This document shows positions 8,111 to 59,259 of a DNA stretch of 64,000 bases, in pieces; position 1 is the stretch's first letter; each line of letters opens with the position of its first letter. The stretch lies in sequence record MW349129.1, one strand, 5' to 3'. Below the pieces are notes generated by a model that did not search any database, was not told the origin of the DNA, and saw only the letters and a list, made by a program, of their open reading frames with translations. The position numbers were made by a program, and so were the translations under genes.

Positions 8111-9262
8111 TTATTTTTCTTTTATTAAGTTGATCAAGTCTTCAAAATCTGGATCAATGATATTCTTAACTTCTTTTAAATCTAATTCTTTATCATGTTT
8201 GATGGAATTAAACTTAACAATTGTTTCAGGTGTATCAAGTTCATCATCTAATATGAACTGATACTTTTCATCTACTTTTACTTCCTTGATATTTTTGTTG
8301 TTAAATTGAACCTTTATATTTTTATCAGAACTTGAAATTTGCTTAATTATATCAACGTCATCCTTAGAACTAGAAACAAATCTTACATAATCATTTTCTT
8401 GACGTAACTCATTGATTATTTCTAGTTTCTTTTGTTCTGTTAACTCCTCATATTGATCCATATTTATAGTAACGTAAGTTGGTGCATCTTCATTTTCAAT
8501 TAATTCTACATTGTATTTATCTGTATCAAGATCATTAGTTACAACTAAAAATCCTTTATCTTCAGTATCTTTAAATGAATATCTTGAATATGAACCAGTA
8601 TAATACACTTTATCTTTATATTCGTGATAATCATGAATATGTCCGTATACAGACACTCCTTTGGTAACTCTCATTAATTCTTTTGATTCTAATATAGGAG
8701 CCGACTTAACAGGATTTTCTGAATCATCTTCATCTGGCACAAATGTGACAAAGTCAATCATTCCATGTCCAAATATATTATCATACGTATTGTCTTCAAC
8801 TGAATATAGTAACTCATTATAAAATTCTTTCTTATCATCTGGATACTCTTCAGGTATATATAGCACATTAACTTCTTTACCATTATGTTTAATTAACTCT
8901 GATTCTAATGAATTAATAATTTTAAAATTATCATACTCTAATTCATTTTGATTAAACACATCAAGTTGATTAAAATCATGTGTTTTAGTTCCTTTAATTA
9001 ATCTAAGTAAGAAATTTTTATCTTTAGATAATTCAAACATCGTATCCATAAATTCTAGAACTTCTTTACCAGAAGATTCATTAAATCTAATAACTCTATC
9101 AAACAAGTCACCTGAAATAACAACCATATCAATATCATCATTATCTTTAATATAATTTAAAAAGTATTTATCTAATTCTTCTGATAATTTCTTAGGATTC
9201 TTTTTACCGTAGTGTATATCAGCTATTACAACTGTCTTAAATTCATTACTCATTTTCATCAT
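8111..9262 (-). CDS. sbcD: SbcD/Mre11-like metallophosphoesterase nuclease
   Basis: DIHYG, GDLFD, GTKTHD, GHGM and GHIH motifs, GSYSRYSF. Confidence 0.88.
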   Translation of the reverse strand: MMKMSNEFKTVVIADIHYGKKNPKKLSEELDKYFLNYIKDNDDIDMVVISGDLFDRVIRFNESSGKEVLEFMDTMFELSKDKNFLLRLIKGTKTHDFNQLDVFNQNELEYDNFKIINSLESELIKHNGKEVNVLYIPEEYPDDKKEFYNELLYSVEDNTYDNIFGHGMIDFVTFVPDEDDSENPVKSAPILESKELMRVTKGVSVYGHIHDYHEYKDKVYYTGSYSRYSFKDTEDKGFLVVTNDLDTDKYNVELIENEDAPTYVTINMDQYEELTEQKKLEIINELRQENDYVRFVSSSKDDVDIIKQISSSDKNIKVQFNNKNIKEVKVDEKYQFILDDELDTPETIVKFNSIKHDKELDLKEVKNIIDPDFEDLINLIKEK

Positions 9263-46079: not shown

Positions 46080-49000
46080 ATGGCAGAAGTTTTTAATAAA
46101 GATTTAAAAGAGATAGTTCACGATAATATGATGATTTATTTTAATGAAATTAACACTAACCGTCAAATACCGGATATTAGAGATGGTTTAAAACCTATTC
46201 AAAGAAAAATATTATATATTATGTATAAAAATGGTTATAGATCTGATAAGAAATTTGCTAAATCAGCTAGGATTGCTGGTGACACAACTATATTACACCC
46301 ACATAGTAATGATGGTATTTATGATTCTGCAGTTAATATGGTTACACCATTTTCTATGAACCAACCATTAATTGAAGGACATGGTGCATTTGGTTCTATT
46401 ACAGGAGCTTCAGCAGCCGCTTCACGTTATTGTTTAACTGGAGAACATATAGTTGATATGAGTAATGGAGAACTTGTAAGAATTAAAGATATAGTACCTC
46501 ATAGTGAATTAAATAGTGATAATAAAATTGATAAGACTGTCATGGACTTCAGACGTAAACCAGTTAAAGCAATTAAATTCTTTAATTCAGGTAAACATAA
46601 TGTAATGGAATTAAATACTAATGCAGGTAAAACTATTAAAGCCACTCCAAATCATCCTTTATTAACTGTAATCAAGCATCCTACAAAAGGATTAGATTTC
46701 AAATGGAAGACAATGGATGAAATTAAAGAAGGAGATTACTTAATCAACAGAACTATGGTTAAGAATGATCTTAAGGATTTCAGAAGTAAAAATCTTAATG
46801 AAAATGAAAAAGAAAGTTTTAAAAAATGGGGAGAAATTCTTTCTAATAAGTATTTTAATAGAACTTTAGATCCTGAATACGGAGTATTAATGAGAAGTAT
46901 TGAAACTGAAAAGAGTCTTCCTAATAAGGTATTAGAAGCTTGTTTAGGATATAAGAGAGAATTCTTATTAGAGTTATTTAAACAAGATGGATTTATTGTA
47001 GATAATATTGGTTTAGTTATTGAAAGTCATAGTAAAAGATTCTTGCAAGAAATATCTACATTATTGTCTCAATTTGGTATTTATTCTGTAATATCATTGT
47101 TTAGTGATAGTAATTATAGATTGCAAATTCAAGATATTCATTCACTTAAGAATTTATCTAAACACTTAATTAAAGATGATGATTTATTTAAAGATAAAAT
47201 TGATGAAATTATTGATATGTATAGAAATTTAGAAAGTAATAATCATTATCAAGTTATTCCTTATTTAGATGAAGTATTAGATGAAAGAAAAATGACTTCT
47301 TATTTATATCCAGAACTATTCAATACTAGAAAGAATTTCTTAAATAATTTTAATTTACTTGAAGAAGAATACGGTATTGAAATTGAAGAAAAAGATCATT
47401 TAATGTTATTTATCTCTAAATACTTAGACAACAATACTTATTTTGAACAAGTAGAAAGTATTGAAGAATTGGAAGAAGAGGAAGTAGTTTATTCTATTAA
47501 AGTTGATACAGATGATCATTCATTTATGTCTGAAGGATTTATTCATCACAATACAGAAATGAGATTAAATAAATTCTCAGAAAGAAACTTATTAGATAAT
47601 ATCAATGATAATGCAGTTAATATGATTAAAAACTTTGATGGGTCAATGTTAGAACCTTTAGTATTACCTTCTAAATTACCTTATGTGTTAGTTAATGGAT
47701 CATTTGGTATTGGTGGTGGAGGACACAGATCTGATTTACCGCCTCATTCTACTGAAGATGTAATCAATATTACTATTGACAGAATTAAAAATCCTAATAA
47801 GAAATTGAAAACACTTATTAAAGATAATAAATTTAAACCACAATTTCCTTATGGTGGAGAAGCATTTTGTGATGATTTAGAGAAATGTTATCGTACAGGT
47901 AAAGGTTCTATGTTATTAAGATCTGTAGTTGAAAAAGATGAAAGTAAAATGACTCTTACAATTAAAGAAATTCCTTATAACGTTACTCTAACAAGAATTA
48001 AAGAAGCTATTAGAGAAGCACATAAAGAAGAACAATTAGATGGTCTTAAAAATATTAGTGATGGAACTCAAAATGGTGATGTTCGTTTAATCCTTCAATA
48101 TACAAAATCTTCTGACTTAGATTTAGCATTAAATCAATTGTATAAAGTTAAGACAATTACTTCTAGAGTTAACTTTGATGTTAAATTAGTAGATAATAAT
48201 AAACTAGTTGAAACTAACTTATTAGGAATTATTGATAGATGGATTGAGTTTAGACAGTCTACTGTAAAACGTTTTAAATCATTTAAAATTAAAGACTTAA
48301 GAAGTCGTATTCATATTATCGAAGGTCTATTAGTTGTATTAGATTCTAAGAATATCGATGAATTAATAAAAGTAGTTAAATCTGGTAAAGGTAAAGACGA
48401 TATTATCGATGTAGTTAGTAAGAAATTTGGTATATCTCATGCACAAGCTTCTTATGTAGCTGAAATGAAATTATATACAATTAATAATCTTGAAATCAAT
48501 AAATTATTTGATGAGAAGAAAGAAAAAGAAAAGATTGTTAATGAAGAAATGGTATACATGAAAGATGTAAGTAAATTGAATGATCTTATTATTAATGAAA
48601 TGAAAGACATCAAGAAAGACAAAAATACACTTAAACCATCTAGATTAACTAAGTATTCTGATATTGATTTTAAAAATGATAATAAAGAATTACTAGTTAA
48701 AGATGAAGATTTCATGTGTATTATTACTAGACAAAATAAGATTAAGAAAGTTAAAGATGAAATTAGTAAACCTCAAAAGAGAAATGGTAAAGGTATATCA
48801 ATTGGTAAATTATCAGATGGTGATATACCGTTAAACATCTTTAATGCTAATAGTAAAGATAACTTATTCTTAATTACTGATACAGGAAAAATATTCTATG
48901 ATAAAATTTATGAATTCCCTGAAATTAAATCATTGAATAACTTTGGTAAAGATATCAGTAGATTTGTTAAGAATGAAAAGATTATTAAAGCATTTACTTT

Positions 49001-49634
49001 AACTGATGAAGAATTTAAAGATCCAGATACAGCTTTTGTAGTAACGACAGCTTTAAATAAAACTAAAATGGTTATGGTTGAAGAAATTAAAAAATCTGGT
49101 GTAATTCTTATGAAGTTAAATGAAGATGATAAAGTTATCAATGTTCATAACGTACATTCTAAGAAACCATTTAATTTAATAGCTATATCTGAAAAAGGAA
49201 ATGCTATTAGATTCTCAAGTGAATTAATTCCAGTTCAGAATAGAAATACAATTGGTTCTTCTATATTCAGTAATACAACTATTAATAAAGGAAATAAAGT
49301 TGCTTCAACTGTAGTTGACTCTGGACAAGAGAAAATGCTAATAGTTACTCATAAAGGTTTAGCTAAACAAATAATGACTGAAGACATTCCAGTTAAATCT
49401 AGAATGATTAAAGGTGTTATTGCTGCTAAATTTAAAGATGATAAAGATTCTGTAATGTATATTAGTATGATAGATGATGAAGAAGATAATCTATTATTAG
49501 TTACTGAAAACAAAACTATTAATGTACCTTTAAAAGAAATCAATACGTATAAAAGAACGACTTATGGTAATCCAGTAATGAAACTTAATGATAACGAATT
49601 CTGTATAGATTCATCTGTCATTAAACATAATTAA
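46080..49634 (+). CDS. gyrA: DNA gyrase subunit A with intein
   Basis: PDIRDGLKPIQR, KSARIAG, HPH, AAASRY-TE catalytic Tyr; GyrA-box-like QKRNGKG and C-terminal blade repeats. Confidence 0.93.
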   Translation: MAEVFNKDLKEIVHDNMMIYFNEINTNRQIPDIRDGLKPIQRKILYIMYKNGYRSDKKFAKSARIAGDTTILHPHSNDGIYDSAVNMVTPFSMNQPLIEGHGAFGSITGASAAASRYCLTGEHIVDMSNGELVRIKDIVPHSELNSDNKIDKTVMDFRRKPVKAIKFFNSGKHNVMELNTNAGKTIKATPNHPLLTVIKHPTKGLDFKWKTMDEIKEGDYLINRTMVKNDLKDFRSKNLNENEKESFKKWGEILSNKYFNRTLDPEYGVLMRSIETEKSLPNKVLEACLGYKREFLLELFKQDGFIVDNIGLVIESHSKRFLQEISTLLSQFGIYSVISLFSDSNYRLQIQDIHSLKNLSKHLIKDDDLFKDKIDEIIDMYRNLESNNHYQVIPYLDEVLDERKMTSYLYPELFNTRKNFLNNFNLLEEEYGIEIEEKDHLMLFISKYLDNNTYFEQVESIEELEEEEVVYSIKVDTDDHSFMSEGFIHHNTEMRLNKFSERNLLDNINDNAVNMIKNFDGSMLEPLVLPSKLPYVLVNGSFGIGGGGHRSDLPPHSTEDVINITIDRIKNPNKKLKTLIKDNKFKPQFPYGGEAFCDDLEKCYRTGKGSMLLRSVVEKDESKMTLTIKEIPYNVTLTRIKEAIREAHKEEQLDGLKNISDGTQNGDVRLILQYTKSSDLDLALNQLYKVKTITSRVNFDVKLVDNNKLVETNLLGIIDRWIEFRQSTVKRFKSFKIKDLRSRIHIIEGLLVVLDSKNIDELIKVVKSGKGKDDIIDVVSKKFGISHAQASYVAEMKLYTINNLEINKLFDEKKEKEKIVNEEMVYMKDVSKLNDLIINEMKDIKKDKNTLKPSRLTKYSDIDFKNDNKELLVKDEDFMCIITRQNKIKKVKDEISKPQKRNGKGISIGKLSDGDIPLNIFNANSKDNLFLITDTGKIFYDKIYEFPEIKSLNNFGKDISRFVKNEKIIKAFTLTDEEFKDPDTAFVVTTALNKTKMVMVEEIKKSGVILMKLNEDDKVINVHNVHSKKPFNLIAISEKGNAIRFSSELIPVQNRNTIGSSIFSNTTINKGNKVASTVVDSGQEKMLIVTHKGLAKQIMTEDIPVKSRMIKGVIAAKFKDDKDSVMYISMIDDEEDNLLLVTENKTINVPLKEINTYKRTTYGNPVMKLNDNEFCIDSSVIKHN
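46431..47552 (+). mobile_element. Intein (374 aa) inserted right after the GyrA catalytic tyrosine
   Basis: Block A CLTGEH, block B TPNHP, C-terminal HHN followed by +1 Thr; degenerate LAGLIDADG-like FLLELFKQDG. Confidence 0.92.
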
Positions 49635-49930: not shown

Positions 49931-52292
49931 TTGGATGTGAAACTATTGGAAAAGAAATATGTTAGATGTAATTCATGTAGTTCAGTACAAGAATATAGTG
50001 AAGATATTACATCTTGTTCGGAATGTAGTTCTGAAAATATTTCAGTTATTAAATCTCCTATTGATTTAGTTAATGAAGCTGAAATATTAGTTACAGAATC
50101 TGAAATGGATTTCTTATTAGATTATAATGATTCTCAAGAATACGACAAAAAAGGCAAATCTTGTTGGTTTGATATATACTTAATTAAATATCCTAGAGAT
50201 AATACTCAAATTAAACATATTGTATTGCAGAATCAAAAAGGAAGAGAAGAAGATTTATTAATTGATTATGCTGGAGACTATAAAGGTGGTAATCCTATTG
50301 TAATAAATGATACAGGAAGCATTAAGACTGTATTAAATGATGTTGATAATTTATCTGAAGTTGTTAAAGTTAGATTTTTAAGTAAAGAATCAACTAAGAG
50401 AAAAGGTAAAGAAGATTTTGGTTTAAATTCAGAAGAATACGTATCATTTAATAAAGATAAATATAATTTTTATAATGATGCTAAATTAAGAACTTTAGTT
50501 AAAGTACTAGAATCAATGGGTAACACATTATTCTTAGATAGTAAAAATGATATTGTATGGAATAAAATATTCACTGAACATAATGTGCTTAATTCGCCTT
50601 TATTTAATTATCAAGAAGTAATGAATTACGATGAGACTAATCTTTATAAAGAATATGGAGATTATGAATTTGAAGAAAGACTAGAAGACGTTATATACGA
50701 ATATCAATTAGAAAATGAAATTGGAGTATTTAATTTCTTATATAATAAAAATAAAGATAATAAACCTAAATTCACTGAAGATAGAGAAGAAGTATATGCT
50801 ACAGTAACTCCATCTATGTTGTTATCTGATGATTTTAAATTGTCAGAAGATCACGGTAGAATTAATCCGAATGTATTGTCTTTATTATACTTTAAAATAT
50901 TAGAAAAGAAATTAGGTATTAGATCAATTGAATTAGTAACTTATGTAAATTCTAATAGAGATGATATAATTCTATTCCCTGTTTCTTATAATGGACAAGG
51001 ATATGTATTAGCTGATTTTAAATTAGACAGTCCTATAGTTTTTAAAAGCATGGATGATGTTAATAAATATTGTGCATATCAATTTGGATATGATCAAGAA
51101 AATGAAAATGAGGAAAATGAAAATACATTTAAATTCTCAGTTAAAGAAGTACCTGCTGAATTTAATTTCCAAAAAGCTATTTCAAGTAATATGGAAATAA
51201 TTGAAAGATTCTTTATGAAGTTCAATGAGAATACTTTAAATGAAACTGTATTAGAACCAGAATCAGTTTTAAATGAGGCTGCTGGAGATAATAAAAAGAA
51301 ACGTCAAGAAATACAAAATAAAATATTGGATGTTATTTCTTCATTAGACAAAGATCAATCTAATATGAATAAATATAAGGTATTTTTTGATGAAATGAAC
51401 GATGAGGAATTCATGAGATATATTAAGCGATTTGTTAATAGTAATGAAAACTTCTACATTGAAGTATTACCTAATAAATCTGAAGCTGGATTTAAAGAAG
51501 TTGAAGAAGCTTTAAACAAACTTGATGTACCTATGAATGAATTTGTTTATTATAAACATGATGGAAATAAGGATGATCCTTTAAGAACTAGATATAAAGT
51601 TCCAGTTGGATAGTTTTTGTTCAACTAAAATCATATTAATTGCTGGGAAAGATTATTATCTTAATCAGCATCATTAAAATTAATGTTCAACGACTAAATA
51701 TATGGCTAAGAAGATATAGTCTGATCTATATGAAATTCATATAGACTAACATAAATGATTTACACGTCAAGAGATTACAACAATTATTGAGTTTCTTTAG
51801 CTCAATTAAAATCATATTAATTGCTGGAAAAGATTATTATCTTAATCAGCATCACTAATTATAGTGTTCAACGACTAAATATATGGCTAAGAAGATATAG
51901 TCTAATCTGTATTAAATTAATACAGAATAATAAAAATGAAAAAGAATGCATATAGTCTAGACGCTTCTACAAGATCAATGAAAACTGGTCAATTAACTTC
52001 ATCTGACAAAGTGGCAAGCGTATCAAATATGGAAGCTTCAGCATTAAAAGCTATTGGAGCTCAAGATATCTTAAGAGAATTGATGGGTCCACGTTCAGAC
52101 TCTATGAATGCTAAGCAAGAATTAAATAAAAATATTTCTATGTATGGATATTCTCGATTAGAAGATTTACCAGATGATCTTTCTGATAAAACTACATTAA
52201 ATACTACTTTCTATTATTTACTAGGTGCTGGTATAGAATCCGATTTACTTAAAGATACTAGACCTGACTACGATCAAGAAGAAGAAGAATAA
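49931..52292 (+). CDS. Phage multisubunit RNA polymerase, beta C-terminal fragment, spliced: join(49931..51611,51758..51792,51939..52292), 689 aa
   Basis: Spliced product KVPVG-YLHVKRLQQLLS-KKNAYSLDASTRSMKTGQLTSSDKVASVSNMEASALKAIGAQDILRELMGPRSD aligns by eye with bacterial RpoB VGY.Y..KL.H.V..K..ARS..T.QP..G..R.GEME..AL.A.GA...L.E.L..KSD. Confidence 0.82.
51612..51757 (+). ncRNA. ORF-less group I intron (146 nt) in the RNAP subunit gene, copy A
   Basis: P1: exon AGTTGGAT pairs 8/8 with GTTCAACT, U-G at the splice site; P/Q/R/S elements; ends AAATG. Confidence 0.9.
51793..51938 (+). ncRNA. ORF-less group I intron (146 nt) in the RNAP subunit gene, copy B
   Basis: P1: exon ATTGAGT pairs with GCTCAAT, U-G at the splice site; core nearly identical to copy A; ends AAATG. 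Confidence 0.9.
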
Positions 52293-56957: not shown

Positions 56958-57689
56958 TTGAGTAAAGATTTTTTCTCTCATAATAAGATAAATTATAATA
57001 AAAAAGATTTAGATGAAATTTACAGACAACAATCTATGGATAGTAATCCATACGGTCATACAGGCTTTGTTAGCAGAGAAACTAAAGAAGAAATTGATAA
57101 ACGCAAAATTTTAGAAAGGGAAAAATTGGAGAGTGTTTATGGCAGTATATATAATCTTGGTTCTATAACTCCTGTAAGTCATAGCCACTATAGACAACTG
57201 GATGAGATTGATACACGTAATACTAATATAAAAGATAACTCTCGTAATTATATTAAAAAAGATTTAGATGAAGAGACAATGAATAGAAGACTTTATAGAA
57301 ACATACAGAATGTGAATACAAAAACTTATGAACAAAAATTAATGGATATATTAGATGAAATAAGAGATAAAAAAATAACTGATGGAAATAGAGAAAGATA
57401 TACTGTTGAAGTTTCAGCTATAATGTATATAACAAGTTGTAAATTTATTCCTGAATTCACTAAAGATGATATAGTGAATGCTTATTTTGATGTAAAAGAA
57501 ATGATGAATAAAAAAGATAAAGCTTTAGGTGGTAGGGAAAGTGTAAAAAGTTTCTCTTTAATATTTGCTAGAGCTATATGGTTTTTAAGAGGTAATATTA
57601 AAGAAAAGAGTATAATAACAAGTCATTCAGCACATGCAATCAATACTAATTTTTTAATAAAAGACTCAGATGATCTTAAAGTATTTTAA
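56958..57689 (+). CDS. Hypothetical protein
   Basis: 243-aa ORF, AGGAG RBS, TTG start. Confidence 0.7.
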   Translation: MSKDFFSHNKINYNKKDLDEIYRQQSMDSNPYGHTGFVSRETKEEIDKRKILEREKLESVYGSIYNLGSITPVSHSHYRQLDEIDTRNTNIKDNSRNYIKKDLDEETMNRRLYRNIQNVNTKTYEQKLMDILDEIRDKKITDGNRERYTVEVSAIMYITSCKFIPEFTKDDIVNAYFDVKEMMNKKDKALGGRESVKSFSLIFARAIWFLRGNIKEKSIITSHSAHAINTNFLIKDSDDLKVF

Positions 57690-57708
57690 TTAGGAGAGTG
57701 AAAAAGAT

Positions 57709-58098
57709 ATGGGAAGTTTAATAGTTTTAATTATGCTAATAGTAAATCTACTATTAGCATCAATTTTCATTTTTAGTAACTTAGGAAAAATGGGTAAATT
57801 TAAAAATAGTTTATGGATTCCAATTGAAAGAGAAATAAAAAATAGAATGAGATTCTTAATGACTATTAATTTTATTCTATTTCTATCATCATTAATACTA
57901 TTATTTAAAAATATTATATCATCTCAAGTATCATTATTATCAATAATTGTATTTGGAGGAATATTTATTTTCTTCTTATTTAAATTAATGAGAGATAATC
58001 AATATTTTAGTAAGAGTAATAAATTTTACAATACAATCTATATGGCAAGTTTATTTTTAGTAACGATAGATGTTTTATTATCGTTCTATAATCTATAA
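57709..58098 (+). CDS. Multi-pass membrane protein (about 4 TM)
   Basis: 129 aa, hydrophobic. Confidence 0.75.
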   Translation: MGSLIVLIMLIVNLLLASIFIFSNLGKMGKFKNSLWIPIEREIKNRMRFLMTINFILFLSSLILLFKNIISSQVSLLSIIVFGGIFIFFLFKLMRDNQYFSKSNKFYNTIYMASLFLVTIDVLLSFYNL

Positions 58099-58167
58099 GA
58101 TATTAATTATAACAAACGTTGCTTTTGCAGATACGATTAAATAAATATATTATAAGGAGAGTTTAAA

Positions 58168-59259
58168 ATGAAAAAATCATTAATAACTGCATCATTACTA
58201 AGTACTGTATTACTATTGGGAGCTTGTGGAAATGAAGGATCTTCATCAGAAGATAAAGAATCAAGTCTAAAACCAGAAAAACAAGAAGAAATTTATTCTA
58301 AAGAAGCAAAATTATTAGGTAAAGCAATGAGTGATGAAGATGCTATGGATGATTCTACAAATAAAGTTTCAGATGATTTTAAGAAATCTTTAGACAGATA
58401 TGAAGATAAAACTAAAAATTTAGATAGCGTAGATACTCAAGTTGGTGATTTAACTTTAAGAGTTGGAAAATCTATTGAAATCATGGGTGATCGTATGTAT
58501 GAATTAGACAAGTTCAATAAAGATAATCCGGATAAAGAAATGGAATATAATTTATCAATTGTTGATGTTGGAATTAATACAGCTCAATCTTTAGAAAGTA
58601 TAAATGAAGATTATGAATCAATCGATGTATCATATAAAAATGAAACTATCGGTAAGAAAGCTAATGAAGAAATTACTGATGTTTTATCAACTTTCCCAGC
58701 ATATGAACTTGATGAATTGATAGATGATTATGGAACAGGTATTGTTGAAAATGATGAAACAGAATTAACACAAGAACAACAAAAAATATTATCAGATACT
58801 AAATATCGAGATGAACTTAAAAAAGAAGTAATGACTCAAGAAGAACCAGATACTTCTAAAAATGAATATAATGAATCTGTAAATATGTTTAATAAATTTG
58901 CACCAGAATTCCTTCATTATAAAGAAGCTGACAAAATGGTATCTTCAACAGAAAATAGCAATATGATGGATATTAGAAATGCTGTTGTAAGTGCTAATAC
59001 AGATGCTGGAGTAGACAGTTATGAAGATATGGAAGAAGATGCTGAATCATTAGATATTGATACTGAAAATATCGAAGATGAAGAATATTCAGAAGATGAA
59101 AAATATGATACTAGCGGTTGGTCTGCAGAAACATATAATGAATTAGTTGATGAATACAATATTCTTACTGATGGAGAAGAAATGGATCATGTTGAAAGAG
59201 ATGTATCTGATATTGAATACGAACAGTTAGAAGAAAGAGTTGCAGATTTAGAAGAATAA
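58168..59259 (+). CDS. Acidic lipoprotein
   Basis: MKKSLITASLLSTVLLLGA-C lipobox. Confidence 0.82.
   Translation: MKKSLITASLLSTVLLLGACGNEGSSSEDKESSLKPEKQEEIYSKEAKLLGKAMSDEDAMDDSTNKVSDDFKKSLDRYEDKTKNLDSVDTQVGDLTLRVGKSIEIMGDRMYELDKFNKDNPDKEMEYNLSIVDVGINTAQSLESINEDYESIDVSYKNETIGKKANEEITDVLSTFPAYELDELIDDYGTGIVENDETELTQEQQKILSDTKYRDELKKEVMTQEEPDTSKNEYNESVNMFNKFAPEFLHYKEADKMVSSTENSNMMDIRNAVVSANTDAGVDSYEDMEEDAESLDIDTENIEDEEYSEDEKYDTSGWSAETYNELVDEYNILTDGEEMDHVERDVSDIEYEQLEERVADLEE

Follow-up and report, generated by a model that had tools for sequence, protein, structure and literature searches.

Self-splicing group I introns are found in conserved motifs of phage genes, namely in orf142 (three introns) and nrdE (two introns) of Twort, in td, nrdB and nrdD of T4, and in SPO1's DNA polymerase gene. 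The Twort and T4 introns are ∼250 nt or longer, with complete P2–P9 cores, and many of them carry endonuclease open reading frames (ORFs). Exon skipping has reportedly been seen in Twort orf142. Here, two direct copies of a 146-nt insert were analyzed in the virion RNA polymerase beta-subunit gene CPT_Madawaska_233 of Staphylococcus phage Madawaska, a 265-kb jumbo phage. The window (the whole stretch of DNA analyzed) comprises 64,000 nt of record MW349129.1, in which megablast located this region at 100% identity, and a window coordinate equals the record coordinate minus 186000. The copies (51612-51757 and 51793-51938, 181 nt from start to start) share with the introns of these phages (for Twort, see PMC3984707) the pattern of several introns per gene and the conserved R and S core sequences. 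They differ from the Twort and T4 introns in their length of 146 nt, in having no P2, P8 or ORF, and in belonging to a family of 12–33 copies per genome.

The Azoarcus pre-tRNA-Ile intron (∼205 nt) is likewise a natural group I ribozyme of compact build whose peripheral elements are short; among natural self-splicing group I introns it is the one usually named as the smallest, which our literature search did not confirm. It keeps P2, P8 and the GNRA tetraloop–receptor clamps, whereas the Madawaska introns are ∼30% shorter and without these. The RNA polymerase introns of the Bacillus jumbo phages AR9/PBS1 belong to the same phage clade and gene set, whereas the family described here was found by blastn only in Staphylococcus phages. 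Many group I introns also fragment the core genes of the Zeta group of crAss-like phages, for which up to 14 introns per genome, detected via endonuclease domains, were called ‘unprecedented’ (Yutin et al., 2021, PMC7886860). The 33 copies found here in the related phage LY01 (OR836606.1) are ORF-less, and because of this such mini-introns would be invisible to a search of that kind.

It is highly likely that the two Madawaska inserts are compact, ORF-less group I introns and that the standard two-step group I reaction excises them from the mRNA. That they are group I-derived introns spliced in vivo can be held with strong confidence, given the selection on the micro-exon between them and the essential genes that the family interrupts. 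According to the proposed mechanism, each intron would fold on its own, and its guide sequence would bind the 7 nt that end the upstream exon, so that a U·G wobble falls at the 5′ splice site. This site would be attacked by a guanosine bound in P7, and the freed 3′-OH of the exon would then attack after the terminal G of the intron; two such splicing events would fuse exon 1 with the 35-nt micro-exon and exon 3 in a single reading frame of 684 codons. The ribozyme would be reduced to P1, P3, P4, P5, P6, P7 and P9, with ∼3 nt before the normal J8/7 strand replacing P8. In MarsHill-like Staphylococcus jumbo phages, the multicopy family occupies conserved motifs within essential genes, and its copies would reach new sites and genomes by recombination in co-infection, dragging flanking exon sequence along; spread by reverse splicing into guide-matching sites is also possible. 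The sequence anatomy, the exact absence from relatives, the purifying selection on the micro-exon and the covariation are observed here; splicing itself, its autocatalytic nature and the route of spread are inferred.

The three-exon split of the gene is itself already known. GenBank gives the product of CPT_Madawaska_233 as ‘viral RNA polymerase beta subunit’ with a three-piece join and the note ‘exon junctions predicted based on alignment to YP_009282982’, and Korn et al. (bioRxiv 10.1101/2020.12.14.422802; later J Virol) predicted the introns of the phages MarsHill, Madawaska and Machias via protein alignment to AR9, giving exon counts only; intron class, structure, size and family relationships are not described there. 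The split, as stated in the original prediction, which was made without knowledge of the GenBank join, is thus not new. The GenBank coding sequence (CDS) starts at 235946 (window 49946), and the first TTG of the ORF lies at 49931. With reference to the intronless orthologue of phage vB_SauM-UFV_DC4 (DC4), the exons are as follows:

49946..51611, + strand: exon 1, colinear with DC4 L002:548-2198
51605-51611, + strand: last 7 nt of exon 1, GTTGGAT, the 5′ strand of intron 1 P1
51758..51792, + strand: micro-exon of 35 nt, encoding YLHVKRLQQLLS together with the final T of exon 1
51786-51792, + strand: last 7 nt of the micro-exon, ATTGAGT, the 5′ strand of intron 2 P1
51939..52292, + strand: exon 3, to the stop codon, encoding KKNAYSLD...SNMEASALKAIGAQDILRELMGPRSD..., the RpoB C-terminal conserved region

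Two separate ORFs are seen at this locus: 49931-51613 is closed by the TAG at 51611-51613, and 51936-52292 opens with an ATG that consists of the three final bases of intron 2. Removal of the two copies joins three exons in frame, whose lengths are 1681+35+354 nt when counted from the first TTG and 1666+35+354 nt when the GenBank start at 49946 is used. The joined product reads ...RYKVPVG-YLHVKRLQQLLS-KKNAYSLD..., and every residue matches the uninterrupted DC4 gene (L002:548-2581). In the alignment of the window to that orthologue, the only long gaps are 51612-51757 and a 146-nt block at ∼51793-51938, where the gap is displaced by a few bases at similar intron and exon ends. In DC4, the protein sequence ...RYKVPVGYLHVKRLQQLLSKKNAYSLD... 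corresponds exactly to exon 1, the T with the 35-nt micro-exon, and exon 3. The DC4 and SA1 genes are without exactly these 146-nt blocks, and intron 1 is also exactly absent from MarsHill. The intact DC4 orthologue, which is present in the virion proteome, aligns to bacterial RpoB (beta) residues ∼1198-1319 (E ∼1e-3), with VGYLHVKRLQQLLSKK opposite VGYMYMLKLNHLVDDKM, and exon 3 gives a weak RNA_pol_Rpb2_7 match. The ORF layout, the in-frame joining and the RpoB-like nature of the gene had all been claimed in the original prediction, and all were borne out. On 49946-52292, the GenBank label ‘beta subunit, N-terminal’ contrasts with the alignment to the C-terminal region of RpoB, and this label may be inaccurate.

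Comparison of alleles shows purifying selection on the reading frame of the putative micro-exon. MarsHill, which is without introns 1 and 2, is 98.4% identical to Madawaska over the aligned part of the gene, with 20 nucleotide differences and 0 amino acid differences in 357 nt; half of these (10/20) fall inside the micro-exon. The micro-exon differs at 10 of its 35 nt from MarsHill and at 12 of 35 from DC4 (29–34%), and the amino acids of all 12 codons are kept. Because this selection acts at the protein level, the micro-exon is expected to be translated in frame and joined to both of its neighbors. Upstream of the intron 1 insertion site (site A), Madawaska and MarsHill are identical for 155 nt, and 18 synonymous differences, 10 of them in the micro-exon, lie between -5 and +82 of this site; for the Ser that precedes intron 2, Madawaska uses AGT and all intronless alleles use TCG. 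In the aligned alleles, the synonymous changes around both introns show what resembles a co-conversion tract, and intron 1 probably came in as one block with exon 2 and intron 2, via recombination with a diverged donor phage.

The elements of the two introns were assigned as follows:

51612..51757, + strand: intron 1, 146 nt, without ORF, P2 or P8
51612-51618, + strand: L1 of intron 1
51619-51625, + strand: guide sequence of intron 1, GTTCAAC
51631-36 with 51700-05, + strand: P3 of intron 1, UCAUAU with AUAUGG
51641-46 with 51665-70, + strand: P4 of intron 1, UGCUGG with UCAGCA
51649-53 with 51658-62, + strand: P5 of intron 1, 5 bp
51672-76 with 51681-85, + strand: P6 of intron 1, 5 bp
51692-96 with 51717-21, + strand: P7 of intron 1, GACUA with UAGUC
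51706-16, + strand: linker of intron 1, CTAAGAAGATA, 11 nt, standing where P8 plus J8/7 would be
51725-32 with 51738-45, + strand: P9 of intron 1, 8 bp
51757, + strand: terminal G of intron 1
51793..51938, + strand: intron 2, 146 nt, the architecture of intron 1 shifted by +181
51793-51799, + strand: L1 of intron 2, TTCTTTA
51800-51806, + strand: guide sequence of intron 2, GCTCAAT
51807-51938, + strand: core of intron 2
51938, + strand: terminal G of intron 2; the last three bases, ATG (51936-38), make the apparent start of the downstream ORF

By alignment alone, the boundary of intron 1 is ambiguous by 1 nt, and 51612-51757 was chosen because the group I rule places a U before the 5′ splice site and a G as the final intron base. 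P1 comprises 7 bp in both introns (GUUGGAU/GUUCAAC in intron 1, AUUGAGU/GCUCAAU in intron 2); its U·G pair lies at the 5′ splice site and involves the final U of the exon. P1 passes directly into J1/3, P2 being absent. Minimum free energy (MFE) folds of each intron with 10-nt exon flanks recovered P1, P4, P5, P6 and P9 (z-scores -3.5 and -3.3). The classical core elements are present in each insert, namely AAUUGCUGGGAAAG (P4 5′ strand and J4/5), AAUCAGCA (P4 3′ strand), GUUCAACGACUAAAU (J6/7, P7 5′ strand and J7/3) and AAGAUAUAGUC (J8/7 and P7 3′ strand). In scans of 181 nt with the Rfam model RF00028 (Intron_gpI), intron 1 scored 29.6 bits (E 3.7e-6) and intron 2 scored 30.1 bits (E 2.6e-6); the P, Q, R and S elements aligned with high posterior probability, GUUCAACGACUAAA and AAGAUAUAGUC likewise matched the consensus with high posterior probability, and P2 and P8 of the model were deleted. 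No endonuclease ORF was found within the introns, which are overlapped by chance ORFs of 34 and 44 amino acids.

The two copies are 88–91% identical over ∼160 nt including flanks and 89.4% identical over the 132-nt core, and six of the 14 core differences make up three compensated base pairs. A 38-nt core probe gave three matches in the window vs 0 expected, the third being in gyrB. The exon-matched P1 with its U·G pair and the terminal G, which the original prediction had read from the sequence of each intron, were reproduced by the MFE folds. Its assignment to group I stood as far as the core is concerned (Rfam alignment and covariation), but the introns are not canonical, with P2 and P8 missing and scores of 29.6 and 30.1 vs 50 bits; its wording ‘near-identical’ is right about the existence of two 146-nt copies and somewhat generous as to their likeness. 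The MFE fold also pairs AAAUCAU (J1/3 and the P3 5′ strand, 51628-51634) with AUGAUUU (51753-51759), which straddles the 3′ splice site of intron 1; such pairing in place of P3 might influence how the 3′ splice site is presented, or it might be chance in AT-rich RNA. A helix of GGCUA with UAGUC in the MFE folds competes with P7, is not conserved, and was rejected.

A covariance model of the core was built from the three window copies and run on phage genomes. In the entire Madawaska genome 12 copies were found, all within genes that GenBank gives as joins or fragments:

gyrB: one copy
CPT_Madawaska_233: two copies
virion RNA polymerase beta C-terminal gene: one copy, P8-containing, at record ∼156030-156170
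non-virion RNA polymerase beta C-terminal gene: two copies
DNA polymerase catalytic subunit: one copy
DNA polymerase exonuclease subunit: one copy
prohead protease: two copies
terminase: two copies

Since Madawaska forms plaques, the interrupted essential genes must be expressed. By blastn against INPHARED, 125 places were matched, all in six Staphylococcus jumbo-phage records and none in Bacillus phages. The model found 33 copies in LY01, none of them annotated; this record has no joined CDS, and the intron-bearing genes appear there as fragmentary ‘hypothetical proteins’. The LY01 genes (L004-L009) often contain four to five mini-introns each, e.g., L004:40375-41104, L007:26783-28125, L008:33675-34417 and L006:37984-39177. 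The third window copy is as follows:

39331..39485, + strand: gyrB intron, 155 nt, P8-less, 133.9 bits, splitting the Toprim motif between ...ITSDAD and DDGLHIQ...

This intron has a 4-bp P1 and an extra small hairpin (CUGU...ACAG) between P1 and P3, at the place of P2, and its LY01 orthologue is 94.7% identical. Elsewhere in Madawaska (L016:7207-8563, record ∼57007-58363), a homing-endonuclease gene is followed by tandem mini-introns (8247-8390 and 8420-8563) between fragments of the terminase large subunit (TerL). Korn et al. reported TerL as not reconstructable, and the mini-intron boundaries might resolve it in Madawaska.

In an alignment of 48 family members, 96.7% of the cells were paired vs 78.5% in shuffles, with 241 double-change cells vs 64 and with 29–48% pairing in slid controls, the alignment being fitted to the model’s own structure and the counts therefore biased toward it. 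Covariation was observed at five of six pairs in P3, three of four in P5 and four of five in P6, as well as in P9; P4 was invariant and P7 (GACUA with UAGUC) invariant or nearly so, as expected for a catalytic core. A matched guide with U·G was found at 10 or more further insertion sites, a tally that uses only cases in which the guide abuts the core, and the last aligned base was G in 40 of the 48 members. An automated search for P1 and an open spliced frame around the 48 copies was noisy in DNA of 23% GC and gave spurious upstream pairing for intron 1.

P8 is present as a hairpin of 4–8 bp (mostly 6–8), followed by NAAGAUA, in 24 of the 48 copies. A linker of 8–12 nt without a hairpin is found in 15, including all three window copies, and in the remaining nine the model match stops before P7′. 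Because 24 paralogues carry P8, its absence is taken as a secondary loss, and the core tree contains at least four such losses. The signature R...S with a short spacer was found at 67 metagenome loci, where the model finds 125 copies, and human-gut contigs of 143–393 kb (L027, L064, L041, L056 and others) carry compact group I intron arrays of up to six in 3 kb. The family has relatives in gut and freshwater metagenomes, and P8-less copies make up five of the 53 distinct sequence contexts (L046, L065, L058/L078 and L072), in lineages unrelated to the Staphylococcus phages. The same signature had 0 matches in IMG/VR and 0 matches in GTDB genomes, the latter giving no evidence for a bacterial reservoir. 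Two substitutes for P8 were considered and rejected: a UAUAU with AUAUA pairing that overlaps P7′ is in conflict with P3 covariation (C-G to A-U in the gyrB copy), and a linker–L1 pairing is not conserved (7/8 in intron 2, 5/8 in intron 1 and none in gyrB). Nor is there a correlation with phage reverse transcriptase, which the intron-free phages DC4 and SA1 carry too.

Besides the bias in the covariation counts, several points weigh against the reading of the inserts as spliced group I introns. To our knowledge, P8 belongs to the P3–P8 stack in every group I structure, and here the 11 nt between P3′ and P7′ (CUAAGAAGAUA) are too short for a hairpin. The loops L5, L6 and L9 are non-GNRA, which leaves the usual tertiary clamps missing, and the P10 of intron 1 is weak, forming a single base pair with the micro-exon. 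Both introns fall below the RF00028 gathering score (∼30 vs 50 bits); no match was obtained on the whole 64-kb window at gathering thresholds, the introns were not reported in an Rfam scan of 5 kb by E-value, and because of this low score routine annotation misses them. The Madawaska exons are moreover a prediction that Korn et al. made from alignment alone.

Because P8 and the usual clamps are missing, autocatalysis without a helper is uncertain. The introns could be group I-derived and spliced but not autonomous, dependent for folding and reaction on another RNA or on a protein of the phage or host that acts as a maturase or chaperone-like factor; this we regard as a serious possibility, though rather less than probable. 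With P2 and P8 absent and no GNRA loop–receptor pairs visible, such help would be understandable, and a shared trans-acting factor would pay in genomes with dozens of near-minimal copies. These phages encode several homing-endonuclease-like proteins, and proteins of this kind sometimes also act as maturases (reviewed in PMC3984707). However, no candidate cofactor was identified, and the P8-less copies in unrelated metagenomic lineages, together with the four or more losses in the tree, suggest that the RNA itself tolerates the loss of P8. Engineered group I mini-ribozymes also stay active after large deletions, which counts against a need for a helper.

It is very improbable that the inserts are dead relics or repeats resembling miniature inverted-repeat transposable elements that stay unspliced, with a 555-amino-acid product to the TAG at 51611-13, a 117-amino-acid product from the ATG at 51936, and a silent micro-exon. 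The RNA polymerases of MarsHill-like phages are already divided among several genes (Korn et al.), an in-frame ATG stands exactly at the end of intron 2, and unspliced and exon-skipped RNAs would both terminate straight after GGA; joining the 5′ splice site of intron 1 to the 3′ splice site of intron 2 is predicted to skip the micro-exon and give GGA-UAA, an immediate stop. Yet 12 of 12 micro-exon codons are kept despite 29–34% nucleotide divergence, which is unexpected for untranslated DNA. No Shine-Dalgarno-like sequence precedes the ATG at 51936 (ACAGAATAATAAAAATG), whereas the annotated genes here have ribosome-binding sites. The motif that would be missing aligns to a conserved stretch of bacterial RpoB, and compensatory change maintains the ribozyme helices. 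Translational bypassing of the T4 gene 60 type, with take-off at GGA before UAG and landing downstream, has next to no chance of being correct and is effectively refuted by the anatomy, for although exon 1 ends in GGA-UAG like the T4 take-off codon and stop, the gap is 146 nt and not ∼50, 51755-51760 offers no matching GGA for landing, AGU and not GGA stands before the second gap, and the gaps, which recur in many genes, have a group I fold that covaries.

Insertions in nine related phage records were mapped onto the intronless DC4 gene. Four insertion sites lie within ∼90 nt of the gene, with micro-exons as short as 18 nt:

Site A, after nt 1651 of the DC4 CDS: P8-less mini-introns in Madawaska, LY01, AH12 and Machias
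Site B, 18 nt past site A: occupied by other introns in LY01, AH12 and Machias, with larger inserts close by in S6 and PALS_2
Site C, 35 nt after site A: intron 2, in Madawaska only among the nine records compared
Site D, after ∼nt 1737 of the DC4 CDS: in MarsHill, an intron of 1328 nt that encodes an endonuclease; in AH12 and Machias, introns of ∼160 nt

All four sites are empty in DC4 and SA1, and an 18-nt micro-exon lies between two introns in LY01, AH12 and Machias. The protein segment encoded by this stretch is the one that aligns to bacterial RpoB, in its conserved VGYMYMLKLNHLVDDK...GEMEVWALEAYGAA region (E ∼1e-3). In Machias (L014:2960-3640) and AH12 (L010), the gene apparently contains three introns, at sites A, B and D, which makes four exons, two of them micro-exons (18 and 68 nt), while the GenBank record of Machias gives a three-piece join only. 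At site D, the introns of MarsHill (L003:2299-3626) and Machias (L014:3411-3603) match at 57 of 66 nt in their 3′ ends (P7′, P9 and 3′ splice site) and differ in their 5′ halves; from this pattern they look mosaic. The large inserts of S6 (L012, 1918 nt, with a 1311-nt ORF) and PALS_2 (L011, 581 nt) lie ∼21 nt past site A and were unmatched by the core model.

The original prediction also held that one intron had colonized both Madawaska sites and re-tuned its guide each time. By identity, the nearest of the 47 other copies to intron 2 is indeed intron 1 (89.4%), followed by LY01 intron 1 (87.1%), and the intron 1 copies of Madawaska and LY01 are 94.7% identical. In the tree, introns 1 and 2 fall into one six-member P8-less clade (Shimodaira–Hasegawa-like approximate likelihood ratio test, SH-aLRT, 82), but within this clade intron 2 groups with the prohead-protease introns, the alignment being short and the support moderate. 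Site C (AUUGAGU) has seven bases, and the guide of intron 1 (GUUCAAC) can already pair with six of these, two as wobbles, whereas the CUUUCG of intronless alleles cannot pair. For reverse splicing, 4–6 nt are said to suffice (PMC3984707), and the scenario is plausible because the observed pairing falls inside this range. Colonization of both sites by one intron, in whichever direction and phage, is thus only plausible.

The literature was searched for small or P8-less group I introns, and nothing relevant was found. In the literature searched, the group I assignment with the 146-nt, P2-less and P8-less architecture, the multicopy family (12 copies in Madawaska, 33 in LY01), the four-site hot spot with 18–35-nt micro-exons, and the recoded exon tract all appear to be undescribed. 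A bolder proposal, which we advance tentatively and think somewhat doubtful, is that the 146-nt elements and their metagenome relatives form a natural minimal ribozyme class that splices autonomously without P2 and P8 and multiplies in jumbo-phage genomes by reverse splicing into transcript sites matching 6–7 guide nt. If this is true, a natural group I core of ∼132 nt plus P1, without P2, P8 and clamps, would redefine the minimal natural group I ribozyme; the Madawaska elements would be the smallest natural self-splicing group I introns and would provide a very small scaffold for structural and engineering work. Close ORF-less relatives at many sites with re-matched guides are the type of circumstantial evidence used for ectopic reverse splicing, which so far has come mainly from ribosomal DNA (PMC3984707). 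Phage crosses make the question of intron mobility testable, and the covariance model built here would repair annotations such as those of LY01 and resolve genes like terminase.

In the window, both gyrB and the RNA polymerase gene bear introns, and the gene upstream of the latter, gyrA (46080-49634), contains an annotated class 1 intein.

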